In this document: one piece after another, positions 5,693 through 64,000 of the stretch
Position numbering within the stretch: the first letter of the stretch is position 1
How the letters are laid out: every line of letters begins with the position of its first letter
Assembly: GCA_002269645.1 (NCBI GenBank)
Contig: NIVC01000275.1
Location: 362,327 to 426,326 of the forward strand
Origin: Macrostomum lignano
Lineage: Eukaryota
Length of the DNA: 64,000 nt
Direction: 5' to 3'
Notes under the pieces: model-generated
The model's input: only the letters and a program-made list of their open reading frames with translations
What the model was told of the DNA's origin: nothing
Database searches by the model: none
Program-made: the position numbers and the translations under genes

Positions 5693-6390
5693 GCGTTGTC
5701 AGGGGTGCCATTGTGGGTGTTGTCAGTGGAGCTACACTGGGTGTTGTCAGTGGAGCTACAGTGGGTGTTGTCAGTGGAGCTACAGTGGGTGTTGTCAGTG
5801 GAGCTACAGTGGGTGTTGTCAGTGGAGCTACAGTGGGTGTTGTCAGTGGAGCTACAGTGGGTGTTGTCAGTGGAGCTACAGTGGGTGTTGTCAGTGGAGC
5901 TACAGTGGGTGTTGTCAGTGGAGCTACAATGGGTGTTGTCAGTGGAGCTACAGTGAGTGTTGTCAGTGGAGCTACAGTGGGTGTTGTCGGGGGTGCCACA
6001 GTGGGTGTTGTCAGTGGAGCTACAGGGGGTGTTGTCAGTGGAGCTACAGTGGGTGTTGTCGGGGGTGCCACAGTGGGTGTTGTCAGTGGAGCTACAGGGG
6101 GTGTTGTCAGTGGAGCTACAGTGAGTGTTGTCAGTGGAGCTACAGTGGGTGTTGCTACAGTGGGTTTTGTCGGGGAGCTACAGTGGGTGCTGTCGGGGGT
6201 GTCACAGTGGGTGTTGTCAGGGGTGTCACAGTGGGTGTTGTCGGGGGTGTTACAGTGGGTGTTGTCGGGGGTGTCACAGTGGGTGTTGTCGGGGGTGTCA
6301 CAGTGGGTGTTGTCGGGGGTGTCACAGTGGGTGTTTTCGGGGGTGTCACAGTGGGTGTTGTCGGGGGTGTCACAGTGGGTGTTGTCGGGG
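5693..6390. repeat. 24-bp minisatellite, about 29 copies (CAGTGGGTGTTGTCAGTGGAGCTA grading into CAGTGGGTGTTGTCGGGGGTGTCA)
   Basis: Direct observation; 8-aa periodicity in all translated frames. Confidence 0.95.
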
Positions 6391-6449
6391 GCGCAAAGAT
6401 ATTTATTTGACACTCTGTAAGCCAACAATCGAAGTCCTTCCATTGATTC

Positions 6450-8968
6450 TCACTCAGCCGACGGCTTCCAGGCTCGAGCGAACCGCCTGCCCTGGTCGAT
6501 CTGCTCGCCGAGCTCCTGAGCCGCCTCGCTCAGCAGCTGCGCCTCCGACTCGGACAGCCGGCCGACGCCCAGGTTCTGCTCGACTCCCTCCTGGCCGAGC
6601 AGCAGCGGGTTTGAGCAGAACGCCGGTCCGTCCGTCGCGTCCGACTCAACGTAGGCGGACTCGACAACATTCTGCCTGCCGTCCATGGCACACAGCAGCG
6701 AGTGCAGGAAGCCGTGGGCCGCGGCCGCCACGGACAACGAGGCGGAGCCGGCGCCGGCCTTGGCCTGCAGCACGGTGTCAGCTGCGCCGCGGACAGCCCG
6801 GGTCATGGCAAGCAGCTCGCTGGCTGGCAGGCGGCAGTGCGGCTCCACCTGGCTCAGCACCGGCACCAAAGTCGAGCTGCTGTGGCCGCCGACCACCGGC
6901 ACGCTGACTTGGTCCAACGGTGTGCCTGCGATCGGTGCACAGTGGTGTTGGATCGGTGCACAGGGGTGTTGGATCGGTGCACAGAGGTGTTGGATCGGTG
7001 CACAGGGGTTTTGGATCGGTGCACAGGGGTGTTGGATCGGTGCACAGGGGTGTTGGATCGGTGCACAGAGGTGTTGGATCGGTGCACAGGGGTTTTGGAT
7101 CGGTGCACAGGGGTGTTGGATCTGTGCACAGGGGTATTGGATCGGTGCACAGGGGTGTTGGATCGGTGCAAAGTGGTGTTGGATCTGTGCACAGGAATAT
7201 TGGATCGGTGCACAGGGGTGTTGGATCTGTGCACAGGGGTATTGGATCGGTGCACAGGGGTGTTGGATCTGTGCACAGGGGTGTTGGATCTGTGCACAGG
7301 GGTATTGGATCGGTGCACAGGGGTGTTGGATCTGTGCACAGGGGTATTGGATCGGTGCAAGTGGTGTTGGATCGGTGCACAGGGGTGTTGGATCTGTGCA
7401 CAGGTGTATTGGATCGGTGCACAGGGGTGTTGGATCGGTGCACAGGGGTGTTGGATCTGTGCACAGGGGTATTGGATCGGTGCACAGGGGTGTTGGATCT
7501 GTGCACAGGGGTATTGGATCGGTGCAAGTGGTGTTGGATCGGTGCACAGGGGTGTTGGATCTGTGCACAGGGGTATTGGATCGGTGCACAGGGGTGTTGG
7601 ATCGGTGCAAAGTGGTGTTGGATCTGTGCACAGGGGTATTGGATCGGTGCACAGGGGTGTTGGATCTGTGCACAGGGGTATTGGATCGGTGCACAGGGGT
7701 GTTGGATCTGTGCACAGGGGTATTGGATCGGTGCACAGGGGTGTTGGATCGGTGCAAAGTGGTGTTGGATCGGTGCACAGGGGTATTGGATCGGTGCACA
7801 GGGGTGTTGGATCGGTGCACAGGGGTGTTGGATCGGTGCAAAGTGGTGTTGGATCTGTGCACAGGGGTATTGGATCGGTGCACAGGGGTGTTGGATCGGT
7901 GCACAGGGGTGTTGGATCGGTGCAAAGTGGTGTTGGATCGGTGCACAGGGGTATTGGATCGGTGCACAGGGGTGTTGGATCGGTGCACAGGGGTGTTGGA
8001 TCGGTGCAAAGTGGTGTTGGATCTGTGCACAGGGGTATTGGATCGGTGCACAGGGGTGTTGGATCGGTGCACAGGGGTGTTGGATCGGTGCAAAGTGGTG
8101 TTGGATCGGTGCACAGGGGTATGGGATCGGTGCACAGGGGTGTTGGATCGGTGCACAGGGGTGTTGGATCGGTGCACAGGGGTGTTGGATCGGTGCACAG
8201 GGGTGTTGGATCGTTGCAAAGTGGTGTTGGATCGGTGCACAGGGGTATGGGATCGGTGCACAGGGGTGTTGGATCGGTGCACAGGGGTGTTGGATCGGTG
8301 CACAGGGGTGTTGGATCGGTGCACAGGGGTGTTGGATCGGTGCACAGGGGTTTTGGATCGGTGGACAGTTTGCAATCAGCTGATGCAGACACTGACACGA
8401 CGCAACACTCACCTGTCTTCTGAGCCATGAGAATGTTGGCCCGAACCGAGTTGATGGCCGTGACACCGAACAGCCGGCGCGGATTGTACACCCCGTAGCG
8501 CCGCAGGACCTCAGCAGCCAGAGGCACACTGCTATTCAGCGGGCTGGTGAGCAAGCAGAGCAGCGCCTCCGGGCAGTGCCGGGCCACCGCTGAGGTCAGC
8601 TCGGCCACTGTGCCGGCGTTCTGTTCGAACAGATCGGACAGCTGCATGCCGAGCTGCCTGGGCCGGCCGGCCAGCATCACCACCAGGCTGCAGTGGCGCA
8701 GACAGTCGGCCAGCTGCTGCCGCCCGCCCTGATAGCTGCTGACGCGGGCCTTGGTGGCGATGTGGCCTAGGTCGGCGCACAGGCCTCGGGTGTCCAGCGT
8801 ATCGTAGAGAGCCAGCTCGGACACGAATGCCGACCGCTTCAGCATGAGGGCCAGCGGTTGGCCGACAGCTCCGCAGGCGCCCAGGATGGCCACCCGGTTC
8901 TGCGGCAGGTCCGGCACGCCGTGCAGACGGCGCTGACCGAGAGCGCGGACCAGCTGACTGGAAGCCAT
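6450..8968 (-). CDS. MDH2: Divergent mitochondrial-type malate dehydrogenase (MDH2-like); exons 8968-8413 and 6925-6450
   Basis: RVAILGACGAVGQPL, LYD, ADLGHI, GVYNPRRLFGVT, VPVVGGH and AKAGAGSA match the MDH2 family throughout. A phase-1 GTGAGT...CAG intron (8412-6926) joins KT-G-TPLDQV in frame. Several active-site residues are substituted (see findings). Confidence 0.9.
6930..8362. repeat. 21-bp minisatellite (TTGGATCGGTGCACAGGGGTG), about 68 copies, filling the MDH intron
   Basis: Direct observation; explains the CTDPTPL/VHRSNTP pseudo-ORFs. Confidence 0.97.
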
Positions 8969-10746: not shown

Positions 10747-12528
10747 GATGCTCAAGAGGAATAGCTCAGATGCCAATGCTCAAGAGGAATAGCTCAGATG
10801 CCAATGCTCAAGAGGAATAGCTCAGATGCCAATGCTCAAGGGGAATTGCTCCGATGCCAATGCTCAAAGGGAATCGCCCAGATCCCAATGCTCAAAGGGA
10901 ATTGCTCAGATGCCAATGCTCAAGGGGAATTGCTCCGATGCCAATGCTCAAAGGGAATCGCCCAGATCCCAATGCTCAAAGGGAATTGCTCAGATGCCAA
11001 TGCTCAAGGGGAATTGCTCCGATGCCAATGCTCAAAGGGAATCGCCCAGATCCCAATGCTCAAGGGGAATTGCTCCGATGCCAATGCTCAAAGGGAATCG
11101 CCCAGATCCCAATGCTCAAGGGGAATTGCTCAGATGCCAATGCTCAAATGGAATTGCTCAGATGCCAATGCTCAAATGGAATTGCTCAGATGCCAATGCT
11201 CAAAGGGAACTGCTCAGATGCCAATGCTCAAAGGGAACTGCTCAGATGCCAATGCTCAGGGGGAATTGCTCAGATGCCAATGCTCAAAGAGAATTGTTCA
11301 GATGCCAATGCTCAAAGGGAATTGCCCAGATTCCAATGCTCAAAGGGAATTGCTCAGATGCCAATGCTCAAGGGGAATTGCCCAGATGCCAATGCTCAAG
11401 GGGAATTGCCCAGATGCCAATGCTCAAGGGGAATTGCTCAGATGCCAATGCTCAAGAGGAATAGCTCAGATGCCAATGCTCAAGGGGAATTGCTCCGATG
11501 CCAATGCTCAAAGAGAATCGCCCAGATCCCAATGCTCAAGGGGAATTGCTCCGATGCCAATGCTCAAAGGGAATCGCCCAGATCCCAATGCTCAAAGGGA
11601 ATTGCTCAGATGCCAATGCTCAAATGGAATTGCTCAGATGCCAATGCTCAAAGGGAATTGCCCAGATTCCAATGCTCAAAGGGAATTGCTCAGATGCCAA
11701 TGCTCAAGGGGAATTGCCCAGATGCCAATGCTCAAGGGGAATTGCCCAGATGCCAATGCTCAAGGGGAATTGCTCAGATGCCAATGCTCAAGAGGAATAG
11801 CTCAGATGCCAATGCTCAAGGGGAATTGCTCCGATGCCAATGCTCAAAGGGAATCGCCCAGATCCCAATGCTCAAGGGAAATTGCTCAGATGCCAATGCT
11901 CAAATGGAATTGCTCAGATGCCAATGCTCAAATGGAATTGCTCAGATGCCAATTCTCAAGGGGAATTGCTCCGATGCCAATGCTCAAAGGGAATCGCCCA
12001 GATCCCAATATTCAAAGGGAATTGCTCAGATGCCAATGCTCAAAGGGAACTGCTCAGATGCCAATGCTCAGGGGGAATTGCTCAGGTGCCAATGCTCAAA
12101 GAGAATTGTTCAGATGCCAATGCTCAAAGGGAATCGCCCAGATTCCAATGCTCAAAGGGAATTTCCCAGATTCCAATGCTCAAAGGGAATTGCTCAGATG
12201 CCAATGCTCAAGGGGAATTGCTCAGATGCCAATGCTCAAGGGGAATTGCCCAGATGCCAATGCTCAAGGGGAATTGCCCAGATGCCAATGCTCAAGGGGA
12301 ATTGCCCAGATGCCAATGCTCAAGGGGAATTGCCCAGATGCCAATGCTCAAGGGGAATAGCTCAGATGCCAATGCTCAAGGGGAATTGCTCAGATGCCAA
12401 TGCTCAAGGGGAATAGCTCAGATGCCAATGCTCAAGGGGAATAGCTCAGATGCCAATGCTCAAGGGGAATAGCTCAGATGCCAATGCTCAAAGGGAATTG
12501 CCCAGATCCCAATGCTCAGGGGGAATTG
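10747..12528. repeat. 28-bp minisatellite (GATGCCAATGCTCAAGGGGAATTGCTCA), about 63 copies; the unit is a diverged dimer of 14-mers
   Basis: Direct observation. Both halves end in TGCTCA. Confidence 0.97.
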
Positions 12529-45450: not shown

Positions 45451-46790
45451 TTAGCTAATCAAATGGTTGCTGCCGTCAATGCTAAGACGCATCTTCTTGG
45501 TCGAACAGGCCTCGATGTAAGCTGGCCGAGAAACCGGCTCATCAATCGATACTCGGGTGGCATTGCAACTGCTGATCGTCATCACTTGCGTGCAGGCAGT
45601 AGAAAAACTGATAAAGTCGCTCGCATTAGCAGAGAAAGACGCCTCATCATTGGAAGGCATTGTGCTTATGCTTGGAATGTGCCGGGTTAAGGAACAGTTC
45701 GCTGCCTTGGAACTCCTGAATAGACTGCGGTCCTGGCGCCTAGTTAAATACATTTTGACCGTCTCGCATTTCTGGCTGGTAATAAGCATTATGTCTTGTA
45801 GCGAATGGCCAGCGGCCTCTAGGTCGCACACTCTAGTGACTCTGTGGGAGAATTAAAGGAAAGTAATTTTATGTGAACTAGTTGGAACTATTTATACACT
45901 ATATCGGAAAACGAAGTTTACTTACAGTACCTAATACAGTGATTAGTGTAGACCGGCCTTTGCACTCAGATTCTTCATATTCGAATACATTCTTGAAGGA
46001 ATCGATATCCTCGAGCGATCTTCTCGCGGAACGCTTTTCCAGGTTGTCCTTGAAGAGGCTTTGGAAAAAAAGATTTAGCAGCTTGTGGTAGATGACTGAT
46101 GTATGTATCCATAAGCTCAGTTTCGTAAATTCTGGCGTGCTTTCCGTTGACGTATTTCTCCGGCTGATCAACATCAGCTGACCGATTCTTCGATGGTTAG
46201 GAGGGCAAGGCCATATACTTGCGACCACCAGCATCTACAACGCGTTGCAAACGATCAGGCCTCGTCAGGGCACGTAAGTGCTCCTGTCCACCTTCGCCCA
46301 GCTCGTAGTGAATAGTATATGGCCAAAGACTACTCCCCACCCGAGCTTTTCTACTGAGCCTGCGTGTTGTTGTCTTTCTAGACCATATATACTGTAACTA
46401 GCATATATGGAAACACTAGTCGGACAGTTAACATACCAGCTGCAAGCACGACAGTGTGCATCTGTTCAGCCGTCTCAACCGCCTCAGCTGGAGACTCCGT
46501 CGCAGCAGTTACAGCCGCCCTCGCAGCAGTCGAAGGAGTTTTCGAAAAAGAAACGAATCCATTTAGCTGAATCCTCTACCGTGGTGGCCGGGAAGTCCAG
46601 ACGCACATTACAGCCCTCCGCCTAGTCAGCCAGACGCTTGATGACAGCCCTTTCCTTAGCGATAGTGGAATGCCACTGGTTCTCTAGCTCTACTTACTTT
46701 GCCAGTTCTTCCAACTCGTCCAGAATTGACAAGGAGTCTGGATGTACTGACTGACGTTAAATTCTTGAACTCCTGGTCCATTGGGCAGTA
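45451..46790 (-). pseudogene. Degenerate Crypton (DUF3504-type) tyrosine recombinase, copy 1
   Basis: Across frameshifts: GGQEHLRAL...DAGGRKY...SKN...ARIY...LP...FFPKPL...MKNLSAKAGL...YTNHCIR|VTRVCDLEAAG...IMLITSQK...MY. An 89-bp GT-AG intron (45930-45842) splits the Arg codon of HxxR. Confidence 0.75.
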
Positions 46791-47683: not shown

Positions 47684-49030
47684 CGAGGGTTGTCCCAGAA
47701 ATAGCGGGAAAAATCGGTGGAGAGGCTAACTGTGATATTCGAATTTGATGCAACTTGCGTCATAAGTATTATAGAAAAATATCCAACGGTTGTTTAGCTT
47801 TTTAAATGGGGTAAAAATGTCAATTCATTCAAAAGTTGTGCCTATAATTAGAACAAGGGGTAAGTGGGTAGAGTTACACCAAGTCGAGGAAAAATCGTTA
47901 GAGTTTGTCTGCAAAGTTGGTCAGGCAGCATCGCCATCGCCCTTGACTGATGACTTTTCGACGAAGTTACCCATCAGCCTGCAGCCCTTAGTCCATCGTG
48001 TAAAGAGCGCATTGATGGCATCTGCATAGGCCCGGCGCGGGATCTCATAGAGCAGAACTCGCCTGACTTCCCGTTCCAAAGATGTTGGTCAAAGATGCGC
48101 CCACGCAGGTGCTTGTTCAGAAAAGGGAAAATGGCATAGTCGCACGGAGCCAAGTCTGGTGAGTAGGGCGGGTGGGCCAGCCGATCAAAGTTAAGGTTTT
48201 TGATATGATCGATTGTTTTCTTTGCCGTGTGAGGTTGAGCATTGTCGTGCAACAGAAGGTGAGGCTTCATCGCAGTCCTGCGCTTGTTGCAAATGTCAGA
48301 TTTCAGCTTGGTCAGCGTCTCAGCGTAGCGATCCGAGTTAATCGTGCCGTTCGGCTCGAGAAAGTCGATGGTCAGCGGACCTTCTTGATCGAAGAAGAAG
48401 GTCAGCATGATCTTCTTGCAGTACTGGTCTCGTTTTGCCTTCACAGATGAATCTGAACCCTTCAACGCCCATACCTTGCTCTCCTGCTTTGTCTCCGGGT
48501 CAAAGTGTGGAATCCAGGTCTCGTCGCTGGTCACCACATACGGTCGGAAACTCTCCCACCCACCGGCATCCTGAGCCAGCTCAAGATTCTCCCTGCAGGA
48601 TTTCATTCTTGCAGCTTTAATTTCTTTCATCAACAAACGGGGCACCAATCTTGCCGATAACTTCACCATGCCAAGATTCTCTGCCAAAATTCGGTGAATT
48701 GACGTTTTTTGGGCTCCCCAGCCCATTTGCCATCTTTTTTTTAGCGGTGGAACGGGGATTTTCTTGAATGAAATCCTTTTTCAATTCAACTAGGGCCTTG
48801 GTTGATGAGGAAATCGGACAGCCACGGCTGGCTGTGTCATCAGCAACGTCCGTTCGCCCTTGGCTGAACTCTTCGATCCACCGGTAGGCTGCACTCTTCG
48901 AAATCGCGCCTGCTCCGTGGATGTCAGTCAGCTTGCTGACAATTTCGCTGCCTCGCTTCCCAAATCTCCACTGGGAATACACAAACTGGCGTTGACCTTC
49001 TTTAGATGAAACGCTAAACATTTAACAATT
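47684..49030 (-). mobile_element. Mariner (DD34D) transposon, frameshifted, 5' TIR not found
   Basis: TSDETW, HDNA and YSPDLAPCD with 34 residues between the last two Asp; LVPRLL motif; HTH region at 48617-49021. The 3' end reads TA|CGAGGGTTGTCCCAG at 47682-47698. Confidence 0.92.
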
Positions 49031-49333: not shown

Positions 49334-50345
49334 CACAGAATATACACAGAATGCCAAATCAAGCGATTCCTATGAAGCCGAATTAAAATTCGTGTGCACT
49401 ACTCTTGTTGTGAAGTCTATGGCCAGTAGTATAAATTAGCGAAGAATAATTTAGCAAAGTCCCACAGGCAGTCAGAGATCCTACCTGGAGGACCAAATAT
49501 AAAATTTTATAATTTTTTCGTATTTATCATCTAAACAAACCAACCACTCTGAAGAACTCCAGTTAAGCAAAATTCATTCGCATCATCAACAAACAACAGC
49601 TAAGCAGAATTCATTCGCATCACAGTTAAACTACAGTTAAACAGCATTTAATCGCATCAGCTTCTTCCTCTCTTCAGCTCTCTTTATTCCTGTCGTACGC
49701 CCCCGCTTTCTCTGCTGAGCGAGCGTCCTCTGACTGTTGCACCAGTGATGCAGGCGAAGTCTGGCAAACAACTTGGCCATTGCCTTAGCACACTGTTCGC
49801 CGTGATCCGAGCTGTGCGTCTGAATATTTGCAAGAACCATGGGAAAGAACTTTTCCTGAAGCCGTTTGCTCACGTCCTTCAGAACGAACAGCTCTTTGTC
49901 CGTTGTCGTGAAGGAGCGCTCCATCTGACAGACTGCAGATATGACTGCCTTGTTGGGAATGATTAGATTTCCAGTCCCGCCCTGTCCGTTCTTGAGCTGC
50001 AGGAAGCGCATCTCTCCCGAGCCATCGCCTTTTAACGACTGCTGGCACTCCTCGCATTTTTCCTCAGATTTGAATAGCTTGAAAAGCAACCAGCCTCCAA
50101 TGTAGGCGCACTTCTCATTCTCAATGCTGCCGACTGTGCCAGCAGGCAGGTCTTGAGCTTCCTCAGTGGAGTCTGCTGAAATCAGACCATCGCCCTGCGG
50201 ACCAGGACTGGGCGCACTTGCACTTGCTGTTACTTTGGCCTGAAACTCGGTCAGCAAGGTGCTGCCATCGTTCTCGCAGTTGCTGTTGGTCTGCGATAGA
50301 CAGCCCAACCAGTGGTTGACAGTGGATTTTCCAGCCATGCTGCAC
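49334..50345 (-). mobile_element. 3' portion of a second P-like element: terminal TIR plus an intact last exon of the transposase (49637-50338)
   Basis: TIR CACAGAATATACACAGAATG at 49334. The ORF carries NCEND, CAYIGGWLL, CEECQQSL, LIIPNKAV and FARLRLHHWC, homologous to the 43.7-44.3 kb piece. An acceptor-like site lies at about 50340. Confidence 0.75.
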
Positions 50346-51229
50346 GTAAAAGTCTAAGAAGCTTTGTTTATAAAGAGTGCCGCGGTTCACGGCTTATATT
50401 TGGCACGCAGAAATAACTTGCTCTTTGCGCTACTGTATTGTTTGGCTCTAAAGGAAATAAAAGTTTCTACCCTAGACAATAGACATGCAGAGAAAGTCCG
50501 TTTAGTCTTTTGTCTATACACAACAGTCTGTCAAGTCGGACAGCGGCGCGACCCCGAGACTGCGGGTGGCTATGTTGAGCAGTTCGTCTCGCCCAAGGCC
50601 AATCAGTCGCCGCACCGCACGTACGAGCGTATACCGCTCTCGGACTTGCGATCGATATACTCAATCAATTTGCTATGTACAGTAAACATTGATTGCGCCC
50701 TTGTAGCCAGCGTGGACTGCTTCCATCCTTTTAAAACGCCGCCGCCGCTGCCATTGCCGTCGCCACTACCGCCATCGCCATGTACATCGCCTCTATCGCC
50801 GTCATCGTCTTCGTCGTTGGAAGCGTCGCTATTCGACGCCCGCTGTTCTGATGGAACTGACGGCAGACCCCGACAGACGCGCTCCATTAAAGGCACCGTC
50901 TTCCCTGGTTCTAAGACCATGTCAGCCTTTCGCAGCCCAGTTGAGTCCTCCAAGAGTTTCAGCACAAGCCGAAGGGTGCGGCAATGCTCGCGAAAACGAT
51001 GAACAAGGCTGGCATTTTTCTGAGTGTGTCTCGGAAGAGCCCACCATATGGTGCCCAGGCTACTAACGCTTTCTTCGATACTCGGCCGGCGTATTGGGAG
51101 CTGCTGCGGCTGCGAAATCGCCGCCTGGTCATGCTCCTTATCCACCGCTGACGCTGTTGCTGCTGTTGCTGCTGCTTTAGGCTGACAAAAATTAGCACCA
51201 TCGGCAGAGGTCGGCTGCTGCTGCTGCTG

Positions 51230-54200
51230 TTGTTGTTGTTGTTGTTAGTGCTGAGACGTTTTCCACCTAGACCGGTACCAGCCCCAGTACGCCAGTGCTG
51301 CGTCCGGGTCTTCATTCAGCCAGCTCAACTCGGACGCTCCGTACTGCCGGAGTGTTCCCTCCGTGGCCGGGCAGGAGCAGATCACGTGCTCAACCGTCTC
51401 GGCCTCCTCTCCACAGCCCGGGCAGGTGTCTTTATCGGTCTTCCCGATCCTATGGCGATAAGCCTCCAGCTCGAGCGAGTGTCCGGTGCGGAGCCTCCGG
51501 AAGCTGACACCTTTCGCCCGACCTTGAGTCCTGGGGTGCCTCGCCGTGCCACTTCTCCCGTACGTGCGGTGCCTCCAGCGTTGGCAGTCGCGCTCCTCCT
51601 CCCTCGCGTGGGCATACAGCCTCCTCCTGACCACACTGGCCAGCAACCCGGCGCCCTCCTGGACAAGGGCGGCAGCAGCGCCCGCAGCCTCGTCCGCAGC
51701 CTCGTTGCCAGTCAGGCCGCAGTGCGCGGGGACCCAGCACAAGGTCACCTCCCTACTCTGGGCACACATGTCTTCCAAGAGCTGCTGTGCCCTAAGCGCC
51801 AGCGGGTTGCGGCCTGTGCCCTTGATGGTCATGAGCCCACTCTTGCTGTCCGACACCAAAAGAGCCAATCTCCACTGATCATGGGCCCGTAGCCACTCCA
51901 ACCCGCGGGTAATCGCCTTGAGCTCCGCTTGCAGTGAAGAGGCCGGCAGGCCAGCCGGTTCCTTGATGATGATGGGGACCGCTCTCTGCTCCCGCGGCTC
52001 ATCTGACTTCCAGATCATCACTCCGCTGCCTCCTCCCAGCTCCTGCACCGATCCGTCCGTGTAGATGGTGACGTCAGGCTTTTGACACGCCTCACTGATG
52101 CGTTCCCTGGCAAGCTGCAGATTCTCCGCATCGCTGGATTTTCTGGTGTCCGCCTCGCATGCCATGATCTTGGCCTTGGCTCGCCAGTCGCTCCAGGGCG
52201 CTCTGCTACTGGCGTCGGGAATGCGGTTGATCGTGTCTAAACTGGCGGCCGCTAGGCGAGCGCCGGCCTTCATGCGCCATCCCTTCCGAGCCAGTCTCTG
52301 CGTTGGTGCTTCCTCCGCCAACAGCCTCCTGGGGGAGCCGGCGGGAAGCCGGAGCCATCGATCAAGGCGGTCCCCCCAGTTAGCCCCGCACATGGCACGG
52401 AGGTCGACAAGCCCGCTCTCGCAGCGCAGCGCTTCGACCAGAGTCGTGGCGACAGCGCCCGTGATGACCCGCTCCGCGCTGCGTTGCAGGACGTCCAGCT
52501 TGCGCCAGACCGCTTCGGCGATCCACTGGGTCCAGGCACAAGTTCCGTACCCAATCTTGCTGCGGATGAGGGCGATTTAGGTGACGCGAAGTAGGTCCGG
52601 GTCCCAGCCCCAGGCGCTTCCGGCCAGCTTGCGGTGCAGGTTGATGCGCCTTCTGCAGTCCTGCACTATACCGTCGGCGTGGGCGGTGAATCGGAGCCTT
52701 TGGTCACAAACTAGGCCCAGGAACTTAGGCTGCGCCTCCCATCGAAGCGCCTGGCCCATCAGCGTCACCTGCACAGTCTGCTGGGCCGCTTGGGTGGTAG
52801 CCGGATCATTCGAGAATAGCGTCAGCGAGCACTTGTCTACCGCTATCGGAAGCAGCCACTCCTCGCTCCAGGTCTGCAAAACATCCGCTGCCGTCTGCTG
52901 GGGCACAGCTGCTTCCTCAGCTCGCTTGCCGCTGGCCCAGGTGGCCAGGTCGTCGGCATATCCGCTGACGTTGAGCCCTGGTATCTCCTCCAGCCGGCGG
53001 AGCAGGTCGTCAATAAATATGATGAATAACAGCGGTGAGAGGACAAAGCCCTACGGCAGGCCCTGCTCAAAGAGCATACGCCGACTGTCGACTCCACCTA
53101 TGTTCACACAGGCCTGCCTGTTAGCGAGCCAACCCTGGATCCAGCGCACCATCTTGTCTCCAATGCCTAATTCCAGCAGCTTAAAGAGGAGGCCGTCCCG
53201 CCACACTCTGTCAAAGGCCCTGGCGAAGTCAAATAAGGCGAGCAAGGTGCGTTTTCTCTCCTGAAAGGCGTCGTCAATGAATTGCGTTAACCTGAGGAGC
53301 TGATCCTCAGTGGATCGACCCGGCCTGAATCCGGCTTGGGCCTCGCTGAGTCCTCCATTCCTCTCCAGGACATGCCTGATCCGGTTCCCCAGCATACGCT
53401 CCATGAGCTTGCTGAGGCTGGAGGTGAGGCTCACCGGTCTGTAGGAGCCGATGACATTGGCCAGCTTTCCCGCTTTCAGGATTGGGATGATCCTAGCCGT
53501 GCGCCAATTCTGGGGGGCAAATCCCTGGTCATAGAGGCGATTGATCAACCGAAGCACCGCCCTCCTAGCCGCAGGCGGAAGGCCCTTAAGCAAACGGGGA
53601 TGCAGTCTGTCCATACCAGCCGCCCTGTTGCCGTCCATACAGTTCAAGGAAGCTCCGCTTCCTTGGCCGTATATAGTGGTTACAGTTCCATTGCAGAATT
53701 TTAATTTGCTTAGTGCTCGGCTTCATCACCGTTTTGGTGGCTTCCTCAGTCCTGCCTTGCTCAGTCATGATCGGCGGCGACAGTTCAGTTCCTTCCGGCG
53801 GGGCCCCCGCTTCCTCCCGGCAGTACTGGCAGGTCCAGCCCCACCGTTTGAGACCGTCTATCTGTTTCCGCATGTGGGTACCAGTGCAGGACCAGTGCAC
53901 CTCGGCTCCGCAGTTCCTGCACTGGGCTCCTTGATCTTTCCTGCGGTGACGCTTACAGATCGTGCATCGACTCGCCTTGCGCGGCTGGCCCGCAGTCCCT
54001 AGCTCCTTTTCGGCCTCCACGTTTCCGCTGGGGGAGCGCCCGCGTCTGCCGTCCGCGGCGGTCGGTCCGCACCCACGGCACACCCAAGCAGCCAGGGCGT
54101 CCCTGCGCCATCTACTGAGACCAGTGCAGGTGTGGTGGCTGGTAGCCAAGCATCTGACGTATTTGATGCCGGCCTGGTTTCTCCGGATCTTTCTTTTACA

Positions 54201-54765
54201 GCCTCGGGGTTTTATGGCCTCGGGGTTCCGCCGGTTGTTTTGTTTTTGGGGTTGGTCGGCGAATTCTCCCTCTCCGTCCCGGTGGCTCCCGCCCCATCGC
54301 TTTGGCTGCTGCATCCCGTGGGTCCCCTTTCGTCCTGTCTGCGTGTTGTCGCCTCTGCAGCTCGGGCACGTCCATTGGCCAATCTTGTCGTCCCGCGCGT
54401 AGTACTCACTGCGCTTGAGCCCGCTGCACTTCAGGTGCACGTGCGTCTCGCAGCCGCCACAGCGAGGGCCCCGGCCAGTCGTGCGCCCTGAACAGACTCC
54501 GCACAGCAAGGGACCCGGGTTCCTCTCGACATCGCCGGCTCGCAGCATCAGCAGTCTTCGGCCGAAAGCCGGAGTCTCCGCCTGCGATGCTGCGTAGGCC
54601 GTCCCGTCCGAGTCAGCTCTCTCTCTTCTGTCGAAGATCGCAGTACTTCTGTCACTATTTCCACTTCTCTCACTACCGAAAAGCGTCTCAGTATGTCTCC
54701 GTTCGTACTCAGTCATGGACTGAGCTCCCCGGCACACCGCTCGGCGGTCTGGAGGCTGTGCACGG
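51230..54765 (-). mobile_element. Ingi-like (I-group) non-LTR retrotransposon: 5' HDV-like ribozyme candidate, 2A-like peptide, PHD fingers, APE mostly deleted, RT, RNase H, C-terminal Cys/His knuckle, (CAA)n tail
   Basis: GDVERNPGP; PHD CGVC...HLKC...WTCPSC; ILQWNC then an abrupt jump; RT SYRPVSLTS, QAGFRPGRST, DFARAFD, QG..LSP and YADD; RNase H YTDGS, AELKAI, SDS and WVPAHCGLTGNEAAD; CPGC...TVEHV..C. Flanked by (CAG)n on both sides. One frameshift (about 53055) and one stop (52577). Confidence 0.9.
54695..54765 (-). ncRNA. Candidate HDV-like (nested double pseudoknot) self-cleaving ribozyme at the LINE 5' end
   Basis: P1 CCG(U)GCAC/GUGCCGG, P3 ACC/GGU, L3 GCCGAGC, P1.1 CC/GG, 8-bp P4 GCUCAGUC/GACUGAGU, J4/2 ACGAA, and P2 CUCC(A)G/CGGAG. 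Folded by eye only. Confidence 0.6.
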
Positions 54766-54926
54766 TGCTGCTGCTGCTGCTGCTGCTGAGATGCTGTGGT
54801 CAATGGGGTGGCAATACGACCAGCTTCATCAGCCGTCAGCCCATCCACTTCGCGCTGCGGTACCTGTGCGTGAGCGCGTATTCAGGCAAAGGGTTTTAGT
54901 AGGGTTCGTGCATGCTTGCGCGTCTT

Positions 54927-54988
54927 GCTCACTCACTCACTCACTCACTCACTCACTAACTCACTCACTCACTCACTCTGTCACTCAC
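54927..54988. repeat. (TCAC)n microsatellite at the intron donor of recombinase gene copy A
   Basis: Direct observation; on the minus strand it is (GAGT)n starting at the GTGAGT donor. Confidence 0.9.
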
Positions 54989-57041
54989 CGGAGAAGTGGG
55001 AGCAGTGTCCACAGGCATTTGCTGCCCGACATTTGAATCAGCGGCGGTAGCGGCGGCGGCCTCTGCAGAGCTGCTCATGACTTGCAACTCAGTCTGCGTG
55101 GCGATAGTATGTATGTCCGGACGTACAGCGATGTGGCTCTGTTGATCGTCTGTTGACGCAGCCGCCGTTGATGCCTTTCTACTGCACACGCCGCGGTGCT
55201 TGCGGATCTGCCGGACAAATGCGTTGCATCCGGCGGTGCACAGAACGAGCCGCTCATCCTCATTATACACGTTCGGCTCCTTGGACAGTCAAAGGACTTC
55301 CAAAGGAGCGAGCGGCGAGCCTCTGTGTTGGCGGCGACCCAGTCGGCGTCTGATGGACACATGCGCTGGAAAGGCCTGCCGAGGATGCCAGTCCGGCAAT
55401 AGCTTGTCAGCGTGATGTCGCGACGGAGATCACGGCGACGGAGACGGAGTATCCGCTTTGGCGACGGAGCACGGAGTAGCCATACTGGCGGACGTTGACG
55501 CACTACACAGACGAATTAGTATTAATAATATTATACTGTACAGACTGAGCTAATATAGATGTATGTACAGATGATGAGTTTTTGTGCAATGAACGATGAT
55601 GATGATTATTTAGTGATTATATTCATAACAAGAAATTATGAGCGAGTTATGATAACTAACTGTTGTGTCCCTCCCGACTGACTCGATATGAAAAGAGAGA
55701 GAGAGAGAGAAGAGAAAAACTTTTCCACTCCGAAGACAACGTACATGCTCATTTTGGCTTAAAATCAATTAAAGCTGCCAGATATAGGGAATGAGGCTTG
55801 ATTCCCTTGACTGCCTGCTCAGTGGGTTAAGCCAGCCAGCATATAGCTAGAGTACGCGAAGCTTGGGGTTTCAGCCACAGACATTACTATACGGAGATGT
55901 GCCTGCCAAACAGATTCCCAACTCAGGACCGATCGATTTAGCCACACAGGACAGACTGCGAATTCGGGGTTTGTACCATAAACTAAAAAAGCAAAGACTG
56001 GTTGCCACGTAAAGTATTACGAGTATAATCTATAATTAAGGTGCATTATGTCTTTTCCTCCAATGCAGCTACCGACTCTATAATCGCCGCATCTATTCTT
56101 GGAAGGAGCAACGTACTCTTCTCAGCTGATAGCTAAAATATATACTTCGGTGAGTGAGTGCAATTTGATAGATTTGATATACTGTTGTTACAGTTGCTTT
56201 AGTATAGTATAGTATAGAGATGGGATAATCTATAAATCAAAGTCCATGTCTGTCTATGTATGGATGGTGTTCACTTTCGGTAGTTCAATAGAAATTGGGG
56301 GCTAGGCCACAGATTAATGAAGTCGAAACAGTGTAAGCAGATGAAATGCGATTACTTACTATAGAACTAATTAGTAAATAGTAGTCTATGTGCAGTATAG
56401 CTTACTATAAACGTATATATATACGCTATATTACCTGTTTTTGTGCATGCATTTACCTGTAACTATTTAAAAAGTAAATATAATTCGATGCCTGCTTGCA
56501 TACATAACCATTTAATAAAGAATTATTGCTTCTTGACTTCTTTGTTCATTGAATTGCTGCTGCTGCTGGCATATACATGCCAAATAAACAGGTTTTAAAG
56601 GCCGAAGCTACTCACTAATGGGCAATCAACATGTCCTAATTACGTAAAAACTCTATAACGAATGAGTTAAATCGTTTTTGCAACGTTTACCTCACCAGAA
56701 TGAATATCTGATTGCATAGACGTATTTTGACGCAAAAAGACCGTAAATGTGCCTCCGAGAAGGCCAAATCTGGCTAAAAAAAATTCTGAATTTGGAAGGT
56801 CGGAGATCGGATTTGGGAAAGTTTATAAACAAAATTTTTTCGGTTTTTGGTGTTTCGGTCTGCTTATAAGTTATGGTCACGGCTCGAATATGTCACATGA
56901 GCACGTAGATAGCTATAGCTGGCAACTAAGGTGCTTGTAGCAAAAAAATCGAATGCTACAAGCATGAGCCAAAATGCAGCCATAGACACTTAAACCCCAG
57001 TGTGGCTCAGTCCAGTGTCTATGGTATGTAACGCATTTTAT

Positions 57042-57479
57042 TTAGTAGCCGGGCCAGGAAATTTTTTCACGGCGAAAAATAAATAACAAGAGAAGAAAAA
57101 TAACAAAGTTAAAAAGCACCTCCAGGACAAACAGCTTCAATAGAAAGTTCTTCACCTCACTTTTTGAAATTTCGTCCACGTCGTTTAAAACCAGTAAAGC
57201 TGGACCACCGCCTGTGGTCCAGAAATGCTTTTTCTCGTCGTGCCATTCTCGTAAGATTTGAATTGCCCATTCTGCCTTCCTTGTTGTCGAGGGCGAGCTC
57301 TCCTCAATCTCTCGCTGAAATTCCGCTTCTGTCAGTGTCTGGAATCGTCCCTTATTTTCACTGGAGCGCGCCAACTGCGACTCATTTTCTGTTTGTATCA
57401 GAAAGTCCAGTAGATCCGGAGAAATCTCCCTATCTGGGGTCTCAAAATCGCCAGGATCGGAAGGTAAACCGTCTTCCAT
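57042..57479 (-). pseudogene. Crypton (DUF3504-type) recombinase N-terminal fragment
   Basis: GRFQTLTEAEF...PSTTRKAEWAIQILREW...KLFVLEV resembles the N-terminal region of Crypton/DUF3504 proteins. Confidence 0.6.
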
Positions 57480-60249
57480 GTCGAATTTAACTTGCCAGAA
57501 AGTACGATTGCGAATTGATTAGCAATAACACTACACAATAACACTCCCCAGATTTGCTGTTTATGGCGTGTTGTAAAGAAACAAATCAGGGGTGGGGGGT
57601 GTTATCTCATAATTACGCTACAATAGACACATAATAGAAATGAATAGGCCTTCAAGTTTTTTTCTGAAGGATTTGAGGCGTTTCCCGTCCCCTTTTCTAG
57701 TTGTTCCTGAGTAAGGATCTACAGTCTACTATACTGTTGTTACACAACATCTAAAAAGCATTTGAAATATTAAAAGTAATGAAAATTATATAAGTCTTTG
57801 TTTTACTATTTCAAAATCATTTAGTTGCGCTTTACGAATTCCTTCATCCAAAAGGTTAACGTTGTTGCACAGTTGGCACTGGCATTGTTCTTTTTTATTG
57901 TCTACCTTTTGGTAAGCACACGGGGCGGCTTGCTCAGCCAATAATTTTTTATTCAAAATCTGCATTCCGTAAAGTAGATTTCGCTTCTGCTTTTTTATTG
58001 CCCCACTGAGCAGTCTCTTTTCTTCCGGTAGTTGCCCGTGAGTTTTGGTCTTCACACAAAAAATCCGAAACAGCCATTCTGTGTATGATTCTGTGGTATT
58101 AAAAAACGTTCACTCTTGGTTGTTTTTCCTTAGTGTCTTTTCGATTTCTTAAAATATATTTCAACCCTGCACCAATGATCCGTTAGACCTAAAGGAGATT
58201 TTGCCATAGACAAAAGTAATTCTGGACGCTTGACCAGCAAGTCTGCACACAGAATCAAATAAGAATGACATCTGCACGAGTGCATGATGTCCTTCACGCA
58301 CGAGTGGACGTGAAGGAACCCCACTGTCGGGTGAATCATCAAGCAGGAAACCGTGCAAGCAAAACCGTGCAGGAATGAATTTCTGCGCCAAATGCTTTTT
58401 TAGGCTTTTTTGACTGCCATAGACAAAGTATTTTTCGTCTCGTTTTCATTTTCGTTCCCCTCTGAAAGGTCTGTCCCAGCATAGTATGAGCTCGCATCAA
58501 AATATATGCTTTCAGCCAATAGGAAGGAACGGGGGGAAAGGGATGTTAAAAGCGAAAATCGAGTGAGATAAAAATAACTGGCTCAGATTAGCACTCCATT
58601 CTATTCTTTCCTCCATGGCTGTAATGCCACATTCCAGTTGCGAAGCATAGAGAAGCGCTCAACCAGATAGGCCTATATCTCCTCGAATTGGAAATTTGGT
58701 CTTGAAATATTCGTCGCAACTTTTGGTCGAGTTAAATTCATTGTAGCGGTGTGCCGAAAAAGTTTTCAACAAACAAACGTACCTCTCTTTATTGCCCGAA
58801 TGGGAACCGATGCAACCGAGTTGTAGACCGACAGTTGCAGTCAAAAATGCGCACTGTCGGCGCGAATCCGTCAGCATGTAGAGATACTTTGAGTGCAACA
58901 CAGCGTAACGTAAAAAATCTGAAAGTAAATGTTTAGATTCAGTCAGAGGCCTACAAAGTAAATTAAAAAAACAAATCTGTCTAATTTCTTGGGCAGCTTT
59001 CTTATACTCAATGTGGAAGGGAATGGCAACTTCCTTAAAAATAGTCTATGGCACAGCTCTTAGAATTTTGACTAGAATTCCCCGCGGCGTTGGCTACATT
59101 GAAAAGGATATAGAAGATGGATGTATGCTACTTAGCTCGTAGTTAACTTCACGCCAAGAGTAGGCTCCATACGTATCTTTTTTGTCCTGCGATTTTCATG
59201 CGGAGAGCACGAATGAGCATTGTGTGTGATATTCTGTGGTTAATACTAGACTTTCACTTGCCATCAGACGCAACTGAAATACAAACTAAATGACATTTGT
59301 CGCCGTCGGCTCGAATCTTCTAATTATTCCGATTTTCGTGCCCGAGGATCGTTGATAACGTCAACTGGGCTACTTGCCTCGGTATCTGCAACTTAAGAGT
59401 CGGCGTTAGTAGCCACCGTTAGTTGATTGCTCACAGCACAGATGGCTTGCTCTCGTTTCTTCCCTCATCGAATGCAGCGCTGGACGGATGCAACTCGCCA
59501 CGCCTCATCTCTATAAACCTTAAGTAGCTCTTCATGCCAACTGATAGCGGAGATTCAAAGACTGTGTCTAGCATAGGCATAAGCCTGGAAGTCTTTCATT
59601 TTGAAAAACTCGCTGTCAAAATAACCTTCGGCAGCTTCAGCAGCTTCGGCAGCTTGGGCAGCTTCGGTAGCGGCAATCAAATAGTCAGCGTCAATATCGA
59701 CGTCTTCACAAAGATTGACCGCAGCTGCAGCATGGTCACTTATATAACTTCACAATTTAACTGCTCCTTCAGAGCTGCCTGCCGCTCGGCTTCCTCGCAG
59801 GCCTCGATGAAGGCATTGGCATCTTCTTTGGTTTCGTAGTCGTTGTCCGTATCGCACCAAATTCAATTTAGTTTTTTAAAAGAAAAGTGCTCTGAAAGAG
59901 CTAAAAAAGAAACAGCAGCGATTATATCGTTGTCTTGGTTTCCTTTCTTCTCCTATATATGACTGGGCACCGCTGTTACTTTTCTGTCTATGGCAAAAAG
60001 ACCCTTTTGCTTCACCAAGCAGAAGAAAGAAAAAAATTTTTAATTAGGGAAAAGTGCTAGGCATTGTACATATACACAAGAGTATTATAATGACACGCAC
60101 CATTTTGTTATTGCTTAACGCTGAAAATACATTTCGACCATCGAAAATTTATTTTCATATTATTTATTGAATAACAAGTGAACTTGAAAACATAAACAAG
60201 CAATAAACAAAAAACTCAGCGTGCCTGATTCGTAGAGAAACGGAACCTA

Positions 60250-60650
60250 CCTTCTGAATCGTTCAAAAGAGGCTTCGGAAAAAAGCAGCCGTTTTTCACC
60301 CATGTAGGTAAAGACCTCTCATACAGAGCAGTCAGTTAACGATGCTCTCCGTAGATGCGCGCCTGCTTCGTTCTGTCGTCTTTGCACTTCGCTGGGTCAC
60401 TTGATTGGTTCTTAGTTGGTAGTGGTGGTAGTTCACAGTACTCTTGTCCGTCGGAGTCGATACCAGCAACCAATGCTCCGTGCTGTTTCAAATGTTTAAG
60501 GTGTTCTTGTCCTCTCTCACGTAGAATATAGAGAATGGTGAATACCACCTCGTCCTGTAAGCGTTTCGGCTGTGGTTCTATCAAAGTACGCCTTGACTTT
60601 TTCCAGATCTCCTTCATCGATCGGTAGAAACTGCTTAGTTGTTGACTAAG
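60250..60650 (-). pseudogene. Crypton (DUF3504-type) recombinase central fragment, copy 2
   Basis: PIDEGDLEKVKAYFD..TAETL/QDEVVF...RERGQEHLKHL...DSDGQEY...PTKNQ...ARIY...LP...FFPKPL, with one frameshift and one stop. Collinear with copy 1 at 46.0-46.3 kb. Confidence 0.75.
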
Positions 60651-61554
60651 TGAAATTGATATTTTGTTGCTGTAAATTTTCTTTCCAGTCTATCGCTTTT
60701 TGTAACATATACTGGAATGGAACTTTTCAGTCGCGTGAAGGCCTAAATATTTGTCTATGGCCCACTGCACCAAGGCCTTTAAATTTGTCTATGGTCGACT
60801 GGGTGCCTAATTTTAGTAGCATTAAGTAATGACCGATCTATTATTGAAATTTCATGTGCCATGTCAACAGGTTGCTTCTTTCTTGCTTGATTGACATATT
60901 CGCACGACTTTAAAGATTTGAAGAAAAAGGACGCAAAAATTCAAATGGCGTGCCAAAGCAGAAAGCTTAGTCTCAATAATAAAATATATACCTATCAATC
61001 ATACAGAAGAAGAAATTAAACGCTGCTGTTAGGGATGGCTTCGTTCAACGACTTTAATCTTCCTTGTCTTTACAGTCCAATACAGTAATAGTTTATGGCT
61101 TTAACTTTGGTTACATCTATAAATAACTGATACATTTACATAATAAATAATAATATATAATAATAACATCGAACAACTGATCGCGCAATATCAAAAGATG
61201 AAAAAAATTATAAACAAGGGCTGGCTAACTAACGCATGTCCATCGTACAGTTCATAGTGCGCGCATAATTCCCTAAAATAATACGAATAGCTAAATGGAT
61301 CAAATCCCTTATAATTTTATAGAGTTTATTGCGCGCACTATCAACTGTTCCTTGTTCAACATATAAGATTATTCAATAAGCATGCATAGATTTATGAATA
61401 ATAAAAATACTTTAACAATTGTACGCACGAACTATAATAATATAAACTCAAAGTTAATAAGTAATATAAGTAAAAGCGAATAAAGCACGCACCTACGTGC
61501 GCGCTTTATACGCTATCGTACTAATAGTAATTAAACACACTGGCGGCGGATCTT

Positions 61555-61738
61555 TTAACTCAGCCGCTGAACCTTGGCGACAGGCTGCGAAACAACTCCC
61601 AAGCCTCCATCCTGGCCGCCGTCACAACTTGCTGAGTTTTGCCTCCGCCTCCGCCGCTGCTTGCTTCTGCCGCCGCCGCCGCCGCCGCCGCCGCTGTGCA
61701 CTGCAGCATCAGCGCGCTGCGTCGGCCGAATCTCGCCG

Positions 61739-61775
<37 letters not shown>

Positions 61776-63400
61776 TGTCTTCGGCACCACCGCTGTCGGC
61801 CAGTAATGCCGATCGGACAGCCAGCGCCGAGGAAATTGCGGCAGAAGCAGAAGCAGAAGAATTCGCCAACTCAGACGCTGCTGCTGCTGCTGCTGCTGTT
61901 GCTGGTTTAGTAGGCTGGCCGTTGCCAACTGCCTGGCGCGAGCGGATGACAACACCCATTTGCAGCGCCCTGTGCGCGTTATAGCTGTAGTTTTGGCATA
62001 TAACCGCCGGCGAGGTGCCATGGGCGCGGGCAAATGCGTGCAGCTGCGCCGGCTCCATCGCCAGGACGACGCTGCATAGGGTGCGGCGCCAGTCAGTCGC
62101 AACATAATGCCGGCCGAGCAGCCTATCGCCTCCAGTGCTGATCATGCGGCTGAATGCGCTCTGACTGTAGCCGAGGCCATAAATATCCAAAAAAATTGTG
62201 GACACCTCGGGCGGAGGAACAGACTCCGCGCGCAACGAGGCTCGGCCGGATGTAGGCGTCGTGCAGGCGCAGCAGGGCGTCGCAGAAGAGGTCGGGCAGC
62301 ACCATTGTGGCTGGCTGGCCATTTTGCCCGGCCTTGTGCGGAACTTCGGTCGGCGGCAGCACCAGGTGCGAGTGCCCAACGAGATCTTCTTCAGTGGCAC
62401 TGATGCTGGTGTCGCGAAACAGCTGGTCCCGGTCGTCCGCCGCCCTGTGTCGCACTGCACGGTTAAGCAGATGCTGCCGCCGCAGATAAATCCACGGCAA
62501 TAGTCTAATTGGCTGTTCCACGCTGCAAAAGAAAACGAACTCCTGCACAATGCGCCGGACACATACCATCTTGGCGCACAGCTGATTGTCGTCGTCGCTG
62601 CGAGACGAGCTGTTGCTGCTACTGCTGCTGCTGCTGCTGCTGCTCCAGTCTCCAGTTTGCGGCAGCGCCTCCCAACTGTTCTCAAGCAGCATATTAAAAA
62701 CCGGTCGCGCCGGTCAAAAATGTTGCACACTTTGCTACGTTTAATATAGCTGGCCATATAGCTCATCTGCGACCATGGTGGCCAGCTTATGGAGCTGCTC
62801 CTGGAGTGAGCGTACAGCGGCGAACTCACCTTCTGCTTCGCCGATCAGCGAAGACATGCGCGCAACTGCAAGCTGCCTAGCAGCGAGTGGGTTGTCGCTC
62901 ATCAGCTGCTGCTGAGCTCGCCAGCCGGCCTGCTCGGCATCCCCTCTGTCGTCGGCATCGGCGGTGGTAGCGGCGCGGCGGCGGCGGCGGCGCGGCACAA
63001 AAAACTTTGATTGGCGCAGTCTGATCGCGTCGAGCACCTGCTCAAGACAGCGATTGCCGCGCACTGTGAGCCAACCCAGGATGGTAACTATCTCCTAGCA
63101 CTTGCGGCCCGCCGTTGAAGGCGCCAGCTTCAACTGATTGGTGACCACCTCCAAGCCAAAGACGCCAGCGATGAGGTCAGGCCGCAGCACTAGGTCGGCC
63201 AGAGTGAGCTGCTTGCGCTGCCACAGCCGCTCCTGTGTTGCCTCAACGGAATCGCGGATCTTTCCCCAGCGGCGTTTGTGGCTTTGGTTGGCGGAGATGC
63301 TTGAGGTAAGTTTTCAGTACTGCTTTGACTATATTCTTCTTACGGTTGCCGTTATTAGTAATAAGCGTTATTAGTTGAATTATTTGAGTAGCTATTATCT
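61555..63400 (-). pseudogene. Tyrosine recombinase, copy B (non-DUF3504 type), with stops/frameshifts
   Basis: Ordered catalytic-type motifs QPIRLLPWIYL (R, 62504), PHKAG (K, 62333), ATDWRR (62083), ARAHGTS and ICQNYS (Y, 61987). An upstream helical region fits a core-binding domain. Frame switches near 63.26, 62.74 and 62.2 kb. Confidence 0.6.
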
Positions 63401-63886
63401 ATCTATCTCTTATATTTGATCGCAGGCCCCTTCCATACTGCATGCAATTATAGTTGGAGCAGCACCTAAGCGCACAATTGAAATTAAAATTAGTTGAATA
63501 TCTCTCCTCTTTCCTCGCAGGCCCCTTTTTATGCTGCATGCAATCAAGGACTACTTAACAACTCAGGACGCTACACTCGCGAATGGTAGAAATTCTAGAA
63601 AAGGCCGCTTGCTTTAGCTGTGTCTATGGTTTTTAAATAAGCCTTTTGGATAAAGAAGCAAGTACTAAGTGATAGATAATTATAAAAGTTTTGCGCTATA
63701 ATAATTATTTTTTACAGTTATACAAACAATAAAAAATATGCAAATGTTCCCAGCATAAGAATTGTAAATGACAATTGAAAAGTACGATATGCAACGAATC
63801 GGAAAACTCCGTACATAACTGTATAAGGAAAACATAGATGGCTATAACAAAGTTTGAAAATATGCACGTCCTACTTACTCGTACAC

Positions 63887-64000
63887 ACTCACTCATTCAC
63901 TCACTCACTCACTCACTCACTCACCGGTGAAGTGGGAGCAGCGTTCACAGCATTTGCTGCCCGACATTTGAATCAGCGCGGCGGGGCAGCGGTCTCCGTC
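63887..64000 (-). other. Paralogous copy of the exon end, donor and (GAGT)n tract found at 54927-55050; runs off the window end
   Basis: About 90% identity over the first ~55 nt with 54989-55045, including the same CCG|GTGAGT donor. Confidence 0.85.

Follow-up and report, generated by a model that had tools for sequence, protein, structure and literature searches.

Two broken gene copies, A and B, lie near one end of a 64,000-nt stretch of the genome of the flatworm Macrostomum lignano (assembly GCA_002269645.1, contig NIVC01000275.1, positions 362,327 to 426,326; this whole stretch is called the window and is numbered from its first letter). Sequence comparisons indicate that both are members of one real, rare protein family that is unannotated in Pfam, NCBIfam, PHROGs and PDB. 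In the only full-length member, zinc fingers are joined to a C-terminal domain that carries Arg, Lys, Arg-Arg and Tyr, and the chances that this domain is a tyrosine recombinase (YR) are judged to be roughly even. Likewise, an even chance is given to the explanation that A and B are defunct copies of a deep-branching element of Crypton style; under this explanation, one protein would bind DNA via its N-terminal fingers, and its C-terminal domain of about 200 amino acids (aa) would cut and rejoin DNA through its Tyr. Neither copy in the window is functional, as A is without a catalytic-like domain and B has four stop codons and a frameshift. Between 50,450 and 64,000, all features relevant to the family are on the minus strand (Table 1).

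Copy B and its full-length relative

Copy B consists of an N-terminal conserved region, an R..K..RR..H..Y catalytic-like domain (about 61980-62560) and a low-complexity Ala/Gly tail, in this order. An earlier note on this DNA, made from the letters alone, had described an R..HK..TDWRR..AHGTS..Y series in B, and all of these motifs were found in that order on the minus strand, i.e., IRLLPW (62492-62509), EVPHK (62333-62347), TDWRR (62083-62097), AHGTS (62011-62025) and the C-terminal Tyr (61981-61998). The motifs are split across two reading frames. From 63,313 to about 61,900, one frame gives the most protein-like sequence but includes four stop codons, and the part with TDWRR, AHGTS and the Tyr runs on in another frame. 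Compared to its relatives, B thus has a frame that is interrupted by four stops and shifted once, and it has lost at least one short internal stretch. The stretch with three clustered stops still aligns to the coding sequence of the relatives, yet is shorter than theirs, and it therefore represents decay and not an intron; copy B is one broken gene. A 37-nt imperfect inverted repeat is found downstream of B (61247-61348).

When the longest stretch of B without stops was used as query, an exhaustive HMMER search yielded four credible matches (P0002-P0005; 35-40% identity, E 6e-6 to 8e-4). The top match of this search, P0001, is a 78-aa tandem-repeat protein in which 27 residues were matched 14 times, and it was dropped as repeat-inflated. 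The relatives of the family comprise seven near-identical M. lignano UniRef entries, contig L002 from a JGI metagenome and contig L001 from Logan SRA data; the two contigs are short and have stops in the family frame. The M. lignano relatives (P0002, P0003 and P0006-P0010) carry the automatic names "Ras-GEF" or "C2H2-type domain-containing". The name "Ras-GEF domain-containing" looks like a mis-annotation, and Pfam finds no RasGEF domain in P0009, the sole member that was scanned.

P0009, an M. lignano entry of 1084 aa, is the only full-length member and holds the fingers, the linker and both conserved regions in one open reading frame (ORF). It starts with a C2H2 finger and a CCHC-like finger, which are followed by a long acidic linker, the motifs WW..NKS..HRR and STAG.K, and the C-terminal domain, with ..NRVLPWIYL.., ..LPPSEVPHK.., ..GRNYRASDGRR.. 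and ..YDTSKPVVTRYY in order. The combination of a zinc finger and a C-terminal domain, which the earlier note had proposed from the pieces in the window, is therefore seen whole in this flatworm protein. Reverse transcriptase (RT) is absent from P0009, and no match to it was found in Pfam (E<=1) or PDB. By extension, an intact protein of the family would have C2H2/CCHC fingers, a long acidic linker, an N-terminal conserved region (WW..NAS..R, ST...K/R) and a C-terminal Arg/Lys/Arg-Arg/Tyr domain.

Membership of A and B in one family

The main stretch of B matches residues 707-835 of P0009 (blastp E 4e-14), and the stretch in the other frame matches residues 843-918 (E 4e-8) and is directly collinear with the main stretch; a further, upstream stretch matches P0005 (E 9e-5). 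All 1,979 segments of a six-frame translation of the window were searched with a hidden Markov model (HMM) built only from sequences outside the window (P0009, L001 and L002). Below E=1, its only matches were to B (1e-24, 2e-9 and 2e-3) and to A (1e-4). The match of A is at profile positions 10-116, and overlaps the weakest match of B, which is at positions 72-138, with B matching beyond these as well. The total coverage of the profile is about 10-164 for A and 72-509 for B. B thus appears to lack the finger region or to be separated from it. The proposal that A and B share three collinear motifs was borne out in part; a direct comparison of the A and B proteins was not significant, but both copies match the outside-only profile at overlapping positions.

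At the DNA level, A and B are alike over only about 125 bp, made up of the end of an exon and a (GAGT)n tract, and a direct translated comparison of the flanks of A with B found nothing else significant beyond this exon end. The bodies of A and B are different lineages of one family and not recent duplicates of each other.

Other searches returned no further relatives. The pieces of A and B had no match in Pfam or PHROGs at E<=10, and the B pieces tested had none in NCBIfam or PDB at the same threshold. A word-indexed search of 5.8 billion proteins found nothing when queried with the two longest stretches of B that are free of stops, and the family alignment, used as query of the same collection, returned only the known flatworm clusters. 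No relative of the family was found in scans of IMG/VR and metagenomes. The near-identical M. lignano entries and the stops and frame breaks in A, B, L001 and L002 are signs of a repeat. The seven near-identical protein models hint at multiple copies, and the data support a family that is multi-copy and decaying, as expected of a mobile element.

Copy A and the recurring first exon

Copy A is a dead fragment, which consists of a finger exon and the N-terminal region only and has no catalytic-like domain. Its body holds the N-terminal conserved region alone, with IWW..KNASLVHR at 50996-51049 and an ST..R motif at 50699-50716, after which the frame closes; a catalytic-like domain is absent, consistent with a profile coverage that stops at about 164. 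The body matches residues 506-553 of P0009 (blastp E 3e-4), with a Smith-Waterman score that was reached by none of 2000 shuffles, and its WW..NAS motif is also found in L001 and L002. A continuation of A into a decayed catalytic domain at 50.4-49.3 kb was considered, and was rejected after the weak matches in this region failed a profile search (E 3). Copy A is directly followed downstream, on its own strand, by an unbroken ATG ORF of 233 aa (49637-50338) that has no Pfam or PDB match.

The first-exon-like region of A carries the C-x3-C-x9-H-x3-C knuckle that was reported previously, which is located at 55184-55240. This region is broken as well, with two in-frame stops between its first ATG and the knuckle. 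The best local alignment of the knuckle ORF to P0009 falls exactly on the second zinc finger, with a score of 50 (shuffle mean 29.5 +/- 5.4). This score was reached by 9/2000 shuffles when only the finger region was used and by 124/2000 with the whole of P0009, and it provides modest support.

The end of this exon, its donor and the (GAGT)n tract are repeated at 63.9-64.0 kb, as the earlier note had stated; 54939-55063 and 63873-63996, which are 8,935 bp apart, share 86% identity over 127 nt (blastn), including (GAGT)n and a 29-nt exact block, and the donor/(GAGT)n junction itself recurs at 63886-63950. Both copies of the finger exon end with ..CCG|GTGAGT, and (GAGT)n starts at that donor. The copy at the end of the window has one frameshift relative to that of A. 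Since divergence between A and B is far greater in the bodies than in the 125-bp exon ends, the exon piece at 63.9 kb may be part of an A-like copy or may be the product of local conversion. The 560-bp AT-rich spacer between this piece and the body of B showed no similarity to the corresponding stretch of A, and may be an intron or unrelated inserted DNA.

In A, a long interspersed nuclear element (LINE), which is described below, lies between the first exon and the body, and an acceptor-like tttttgtcag precedes the body just past the tail of this LINE, in the same phase as the first exon. Given the ..CCG|GTGAGT donor, the in-phase acceptor and the position of the LINE between the two, a single intron in A, which now holds the LINE, is plausible. 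The description of A and B as tandem intron-containing genes did not hold otherwise; A represents the N-terminal part only, and most of the "introns" of B are in-frame stops and a frameshift within sequence that aligns to relatives.

Evidence for and against a tyrosine recombinase

The YR reading stems from the order of the motifs, their spacing and an alignment that is collinear but weak. No variation was seen in the candidate Arg and Lys among four lineages of the family, or in the Arg-Arg pair among three; the C-terminal Tyr is comparable only in P0009 and B, where MAFFT places it one column apart. The spacing in P0009 is R-38-K-80-xxR-21-x-11-Y, and the corresponding spacings in lambda Int, XerD and Cre are about 23-28, 72-88, 22-23 and 9. 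With regard to the other members of the YR catalytic set, the first His is Ser or Thr in the family, and the His/Trp position is His in B and Tyr in P0009. The order and spacing of R, K, RR and Y appear compatible with a YR active site whose first His has given way to Ser/Thr.

When the family was compared by hhalign with the catalytic domains of 23 YRs from Additional file 4 of PMC3212892, a full-length collinear alignment of 145 columns was obtained. The columns of R, R and Y coincide in it with those of R173, R292 and Y324 of Cre, and K is one column off K201. The score was 16.9, as compared to 8.3 +/- 1.4 for column shuffles (maximum 14.3; 0/150 as high) and 11.6 for a reversed alignment.

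A number of results weigh against a YR and against a Crypton-style element. The hhalign probability for the match to all YRs was 0.9% (pairwise P 0.058), and matches to single YR groups had scores of 9.8-15.5 and probabilities of 0.05-0.4%. By comparison, known YR groups in equally small alignments score 27-100 against each other, with probabilities of 16-99%, except for CryptonF/S versus the prokaryotic group (16.6 and 0.7%). When an alignment of the lambda Int family, made from phage records, was compared with the family, hhalign placed it out of register and on the wrong domains, with a probability of 0.1%. No YR was recognised by Pfam, NCBIfam or PHROGs at E<=10, and PDB returned no relevant match by sequence or by profile. 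AlphaFold2 models, made from input alignments of 5-7 rows, had a mean pLDDT of 42 for the 461-aa region and of 48 for the 197-aa core, which is too poor for a fold call, and a Foldseek search of PDB with these low-confidence models gave only meaningless matches, with a best E of 0.2 and TM <0.2. In addition, conservation is lacking at two catalytic positions, the first His and the His/Trp. With regard to the DNA around the copies, a search for terminal direct or inverted repeats at A or B found only simple-sequence matches, and no termini, target duplications or intact copy were seen in the window. The bodies of A and B are too different for copies of one element, and the exon piece at 63.9 kb, which is cut by the window edge, may not belong to the body of B.

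Overall, the profile comparison to known YRs that the earlier note had put forward as a check is negative at conventional thresholds (hhalign probability <=0.9%). Its YR assignment is suggested by motif order, spacing and a weak collinear alignment, but not by profile, Pfam, NCBIfam, PHROGs or PDB searches, which were all negative.

A more specific proposal and alternative explanations

A more specific proposal, which is tentative and stands somewhat short of an even chance, is that the family represents an uncatalogued deep-branching group of eukaryotic YR DNA elements of Crypton style, with N-terminal C2H2/CCHC fingers and Ser/Thr for the first His. Such a group would be present in a flatworm and in other sources, and would be as far from CryptonA/I/F/S and DIRS as those are from prokaryotic recombinases.

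Alternatively, the family could be a real, repeated one with a C-terminal domain that is not a YR, in which R..K..RR..Y would be a coincidence within a mostly helical domain (e.g., one for DNA binding or scaffolding) of an unclassified element. This would agree with the negative outcome of all sequence and profile searches against known YRs, with the lack of conservation of the His positions and with a pairwise P of only 0.058. However, the alignment that hhalign produced is collinear along the full length; of the four catalytic positions, only one is out of register, by a single column, and the score is above all 150 column shuffles and the reversed control. Moreover, the Y-x-A-[ST]-x-x-R-R of the family resembles the Y-T-G-H-S-F-R-R of CryptonI, CryptonS and DIRS, as read directly from the alignment of Kojima and Jurka. 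Taking both sides into consideration, a non-YR domain is considered unlikely.

It is quite improbable that A and B are pseudogenes or paralogues of a lineage-specific family of zinc-finger host genes that was locally duplicated and is not mobile. The location of two copies 9 kb apart in the same orientation, the lack of recognisable termini and ordinary UniProt names such as "C2H2-type domain-containing" would all suit host genes, but the bodies of A and B are unlike at the DNA level, and therefore do not represent a local duplication. In addition, the relatives are patchily distributed (the flatworm plus two unrelated contigs); those of M. lignano are multi-copy and near-identical and the others are broken, which is the pattern of a repeat.

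A domesticated viral-type integrase had also been suggested in the earlier note, and a YR without RT could also be viral; however, no relative was found in IMG/VR or in the metagenome scans, PHROGs gave no match and no viral genes adjoin the copies. It is thus very improbable that the family goes back to an integrase that became endogenised from a large DNA virus or a polinton-like virus. Least probable of all is a retroelement of the DIRS/Ngaro type to which the RT and RNase H at 51.2-53.7 kb would belong. This RT unit, although it shares the strand of copy A and is placed between its finger exon and its body, shows LINE hallmarks (a PHD/2A ORF1-like part, the initial residues of an APE endonuclease, a zf-RVT and a tail of microsatellite sequence); moreover, P0009 is without RT, no RT is found near B and the DIRS YR profile does not match.

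Comparison with known recombinase systems

For the preferred explanation, i.e., a Crypton-style element, the closest systems for comparison are the YR groups CryptonA, CryptonI, CryptonF and CryptonS of Kojima and Jurka 2011 (PMC3212892). Like Cryptons, the family has a single large ORF, a YR-type motif set and no RT, and is repeated and decaying; animal Cryptons likewise are without terminal repeats, none of which were seen in the family. In box II, the Y-x-A-[ST]-x-x-R-R of the family corresponds to Y-T-G-H-S-F-R-R of CryptonI (PMC3212892). Unlike Cryptons, the family has Ser/Thr for the first His, an N-terminal zinc-finger module, a very long linker and no DUF3504 match, and its hhalign scores are 9.8-12.7 against CryptonA, CryptonI and CryptonF/S, whereas those groups score 27-79 among themselves. 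The reported lack of DUF3504 signatures in B was confirmed, as no DUF3504 or other Pfam match was found even at E<=10. Small Crypton HMMs did not match A or B, and close identity to a catalogued Crypton subgroup, which would have argued against a new family, was not seen, with no match to the CryptonA, CryptonI and DIRS profiles. The family thus appears Crypton-like in architecture and, by sequence, outside CryptonA, CryptonI, CryptonF, CryptonS and DIRS.

With DIRS/Ngaro/PAT elements the family shares a candidate YR with an RR box and its nature as a eukaryotic repeat, but it has no RT/RNase H of its own (as judged from P0009) and gives an hhalign score of only 11.6 (probability 0.1%). With Cre, XerD and lambda Int (PF00589) it shares the R, K, R, Y order and approximate spacing, and the best hhalign register is that to Cre; on the other hand, there is no PF00589 match at E<=10, and His I and His/Trp III are not conserved.

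Eukaryotic YR elements are few (DIRS-like elements, Cryptons and Starship captains), and their mutual relationships are unsettled. If the C-terminal domain is a YR, a group so divergent, with its DNA-binding zinc-finger module and its modified catalytic residues, would extend the range known for this enzyme in animals and would provide a new outgroup for the question of a single Crypton origin. If it is not, the family would still be an unannotated repeat that has been overlooked by Pfam and NCBIfam and mis-named "Ras-GEF domain-containing" in UniProt. As the copies in the window are dead, their local significance is one of annotation only, as repeat fragments with a nested LINE.

Table 1. Positions of family copies and of the nested LINE in the window
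Feature	Position	Strand	Evidence and remarks
Copy A body	50603..51186	-	blastp, Smith-Waterman, outside-only HMM
Degenerate non-long-terminal-repeat (non-LTR) retrotransposon (LINE) inside copy A	about 51215..54881	-	Pfam, frame map, sequence; approximate bounds
LINE zf-RVT	51359-51457	-	Pfam 2e-3, below Pfam cut-off
LINE RNase_H	51671-52075	-	Pfam 6e-12
LINE RVT_1	53111-53476	-	Pfam 2.6e-18
LINE PHD finger	54357-54503	-	Pfam 2.6e-8; ORF1-like part
LINE 2A-like GDVERNPGP	54510-54536	-	motif coordinates; in ORF1-like part
GTGAGT donor-like site leading into (GAGT)n microsatellite, end of first exon of A	54928..54990	-	sequence; TRF period 4, 15 copies
Copy A first-exon-like region	54991..55483	-	three-frame reading; single CCHC-type knuckle
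Copy B body	61555..63313	-	frames, exhaustive HMMER, blastp to P0009, outside-only HMM
AT-rich spacer, window-end exon piece to B body	63314..63872	-	96-bp duplication (63404-63544) and one CCATAGACA
Second first-exon end, donor and (GAGT)n, cut by window edge	63873..64000	-	blastn, repeats, frames

A LINE nested in copy A

The RT unit at 51215-54881 is a nested insertion unrelated to the A/B family. It shows the hallmarks of a non-LTR retrotransposon, i.e., RVT_1 with zf-RVT, an RNase H, an upstream ORF1-like part and a simple-repeat tail, which is (CAA)n(CAG)n. According to the frame map, RT, RNase H and zf-RVT are in one frame, with two in-frame stops. The endonuclease domain has been deleted; the ORF1-like stretch ends with the first residues of this domain only, and no endonuclease domain is found between this stretch and the RT. 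The earlier statement that no RT, RNase H or gag is linked to the copies was therefore incorrect, as RVT_1 (3e-18), RNase_H (6e-12), zf-RVT and a PHD ORF1-like part are found inside copy A. Its corollary, that the family is not DIRS/Ngaro, still holds, given that the RT unit is an inserted LINE.

Non-LTR retrotransposons of the APE type that carry a 2A-like peptide at the N-terminus have been described (Odon et al. 2013, PMC3708506). Like these elements (PMC3708506), the LINE in the window encodes GDVERNPGP ahead of its ORF1-like zinc fingers, and RT, RNase H and zf-RVT come after these; unlike them, the copy in the window is degenerate, with two stops and a deleted endonuclease.

Neighbouring sequence

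The 8-mer CCATAGAC was found at 14 sites, as compared to 1.2 expected, which is in agreement with a previous remark that the copies lie amid recurring short sites. All 14 are confined to the last 24 kb of the window (40790-63629), with examples at 40790/40862, 56980/57017, 58204, 58417, 59986, 60753/60787 and 63622. The 8-mer is mostly seen as CCATAGACA, and sometimes in inverted pairs or in a 34-bp direct pair, with flanks that are otherwise unlike; it may mark a site or the terminus of a short repeat.

The "neighbouring Cryptons" of the earlier note are fragmentary at best. An HMM of five CryptonA sequences found a weak CryptonA-type fragment at 60339-60689 on the minus strand, with an RGQE..TKN piece (E 0.008), and a weak CryptonA-type C-terminal piece at 45,454-45,852 (E 0.08), within a fragment at 45454-46196 on the same strand. 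A Pfam scan of the former gave no match. A mariner-type transposase (HTH_48, Transposase_1, DDE_3) is encoded on the minus strand at 47,974-49,021 in two overlapping ORFs, and is thus frame-broken.

The window is eukaryotic, with host-like ORFs that were read from their translations as malate-dehydrogenase-like, EF-hand and LIM-domain proteins. Micro- and minisatellites are abundant in it; a 37-bp unit is locally repeated three times in tandem at 49555-49665, and long minisatellite arrays, which are open in several frames on both strands, are found at 5600-8500 and 10800-12500. One of these two arrays abuts the malate-dehydrogenase-like ORF.

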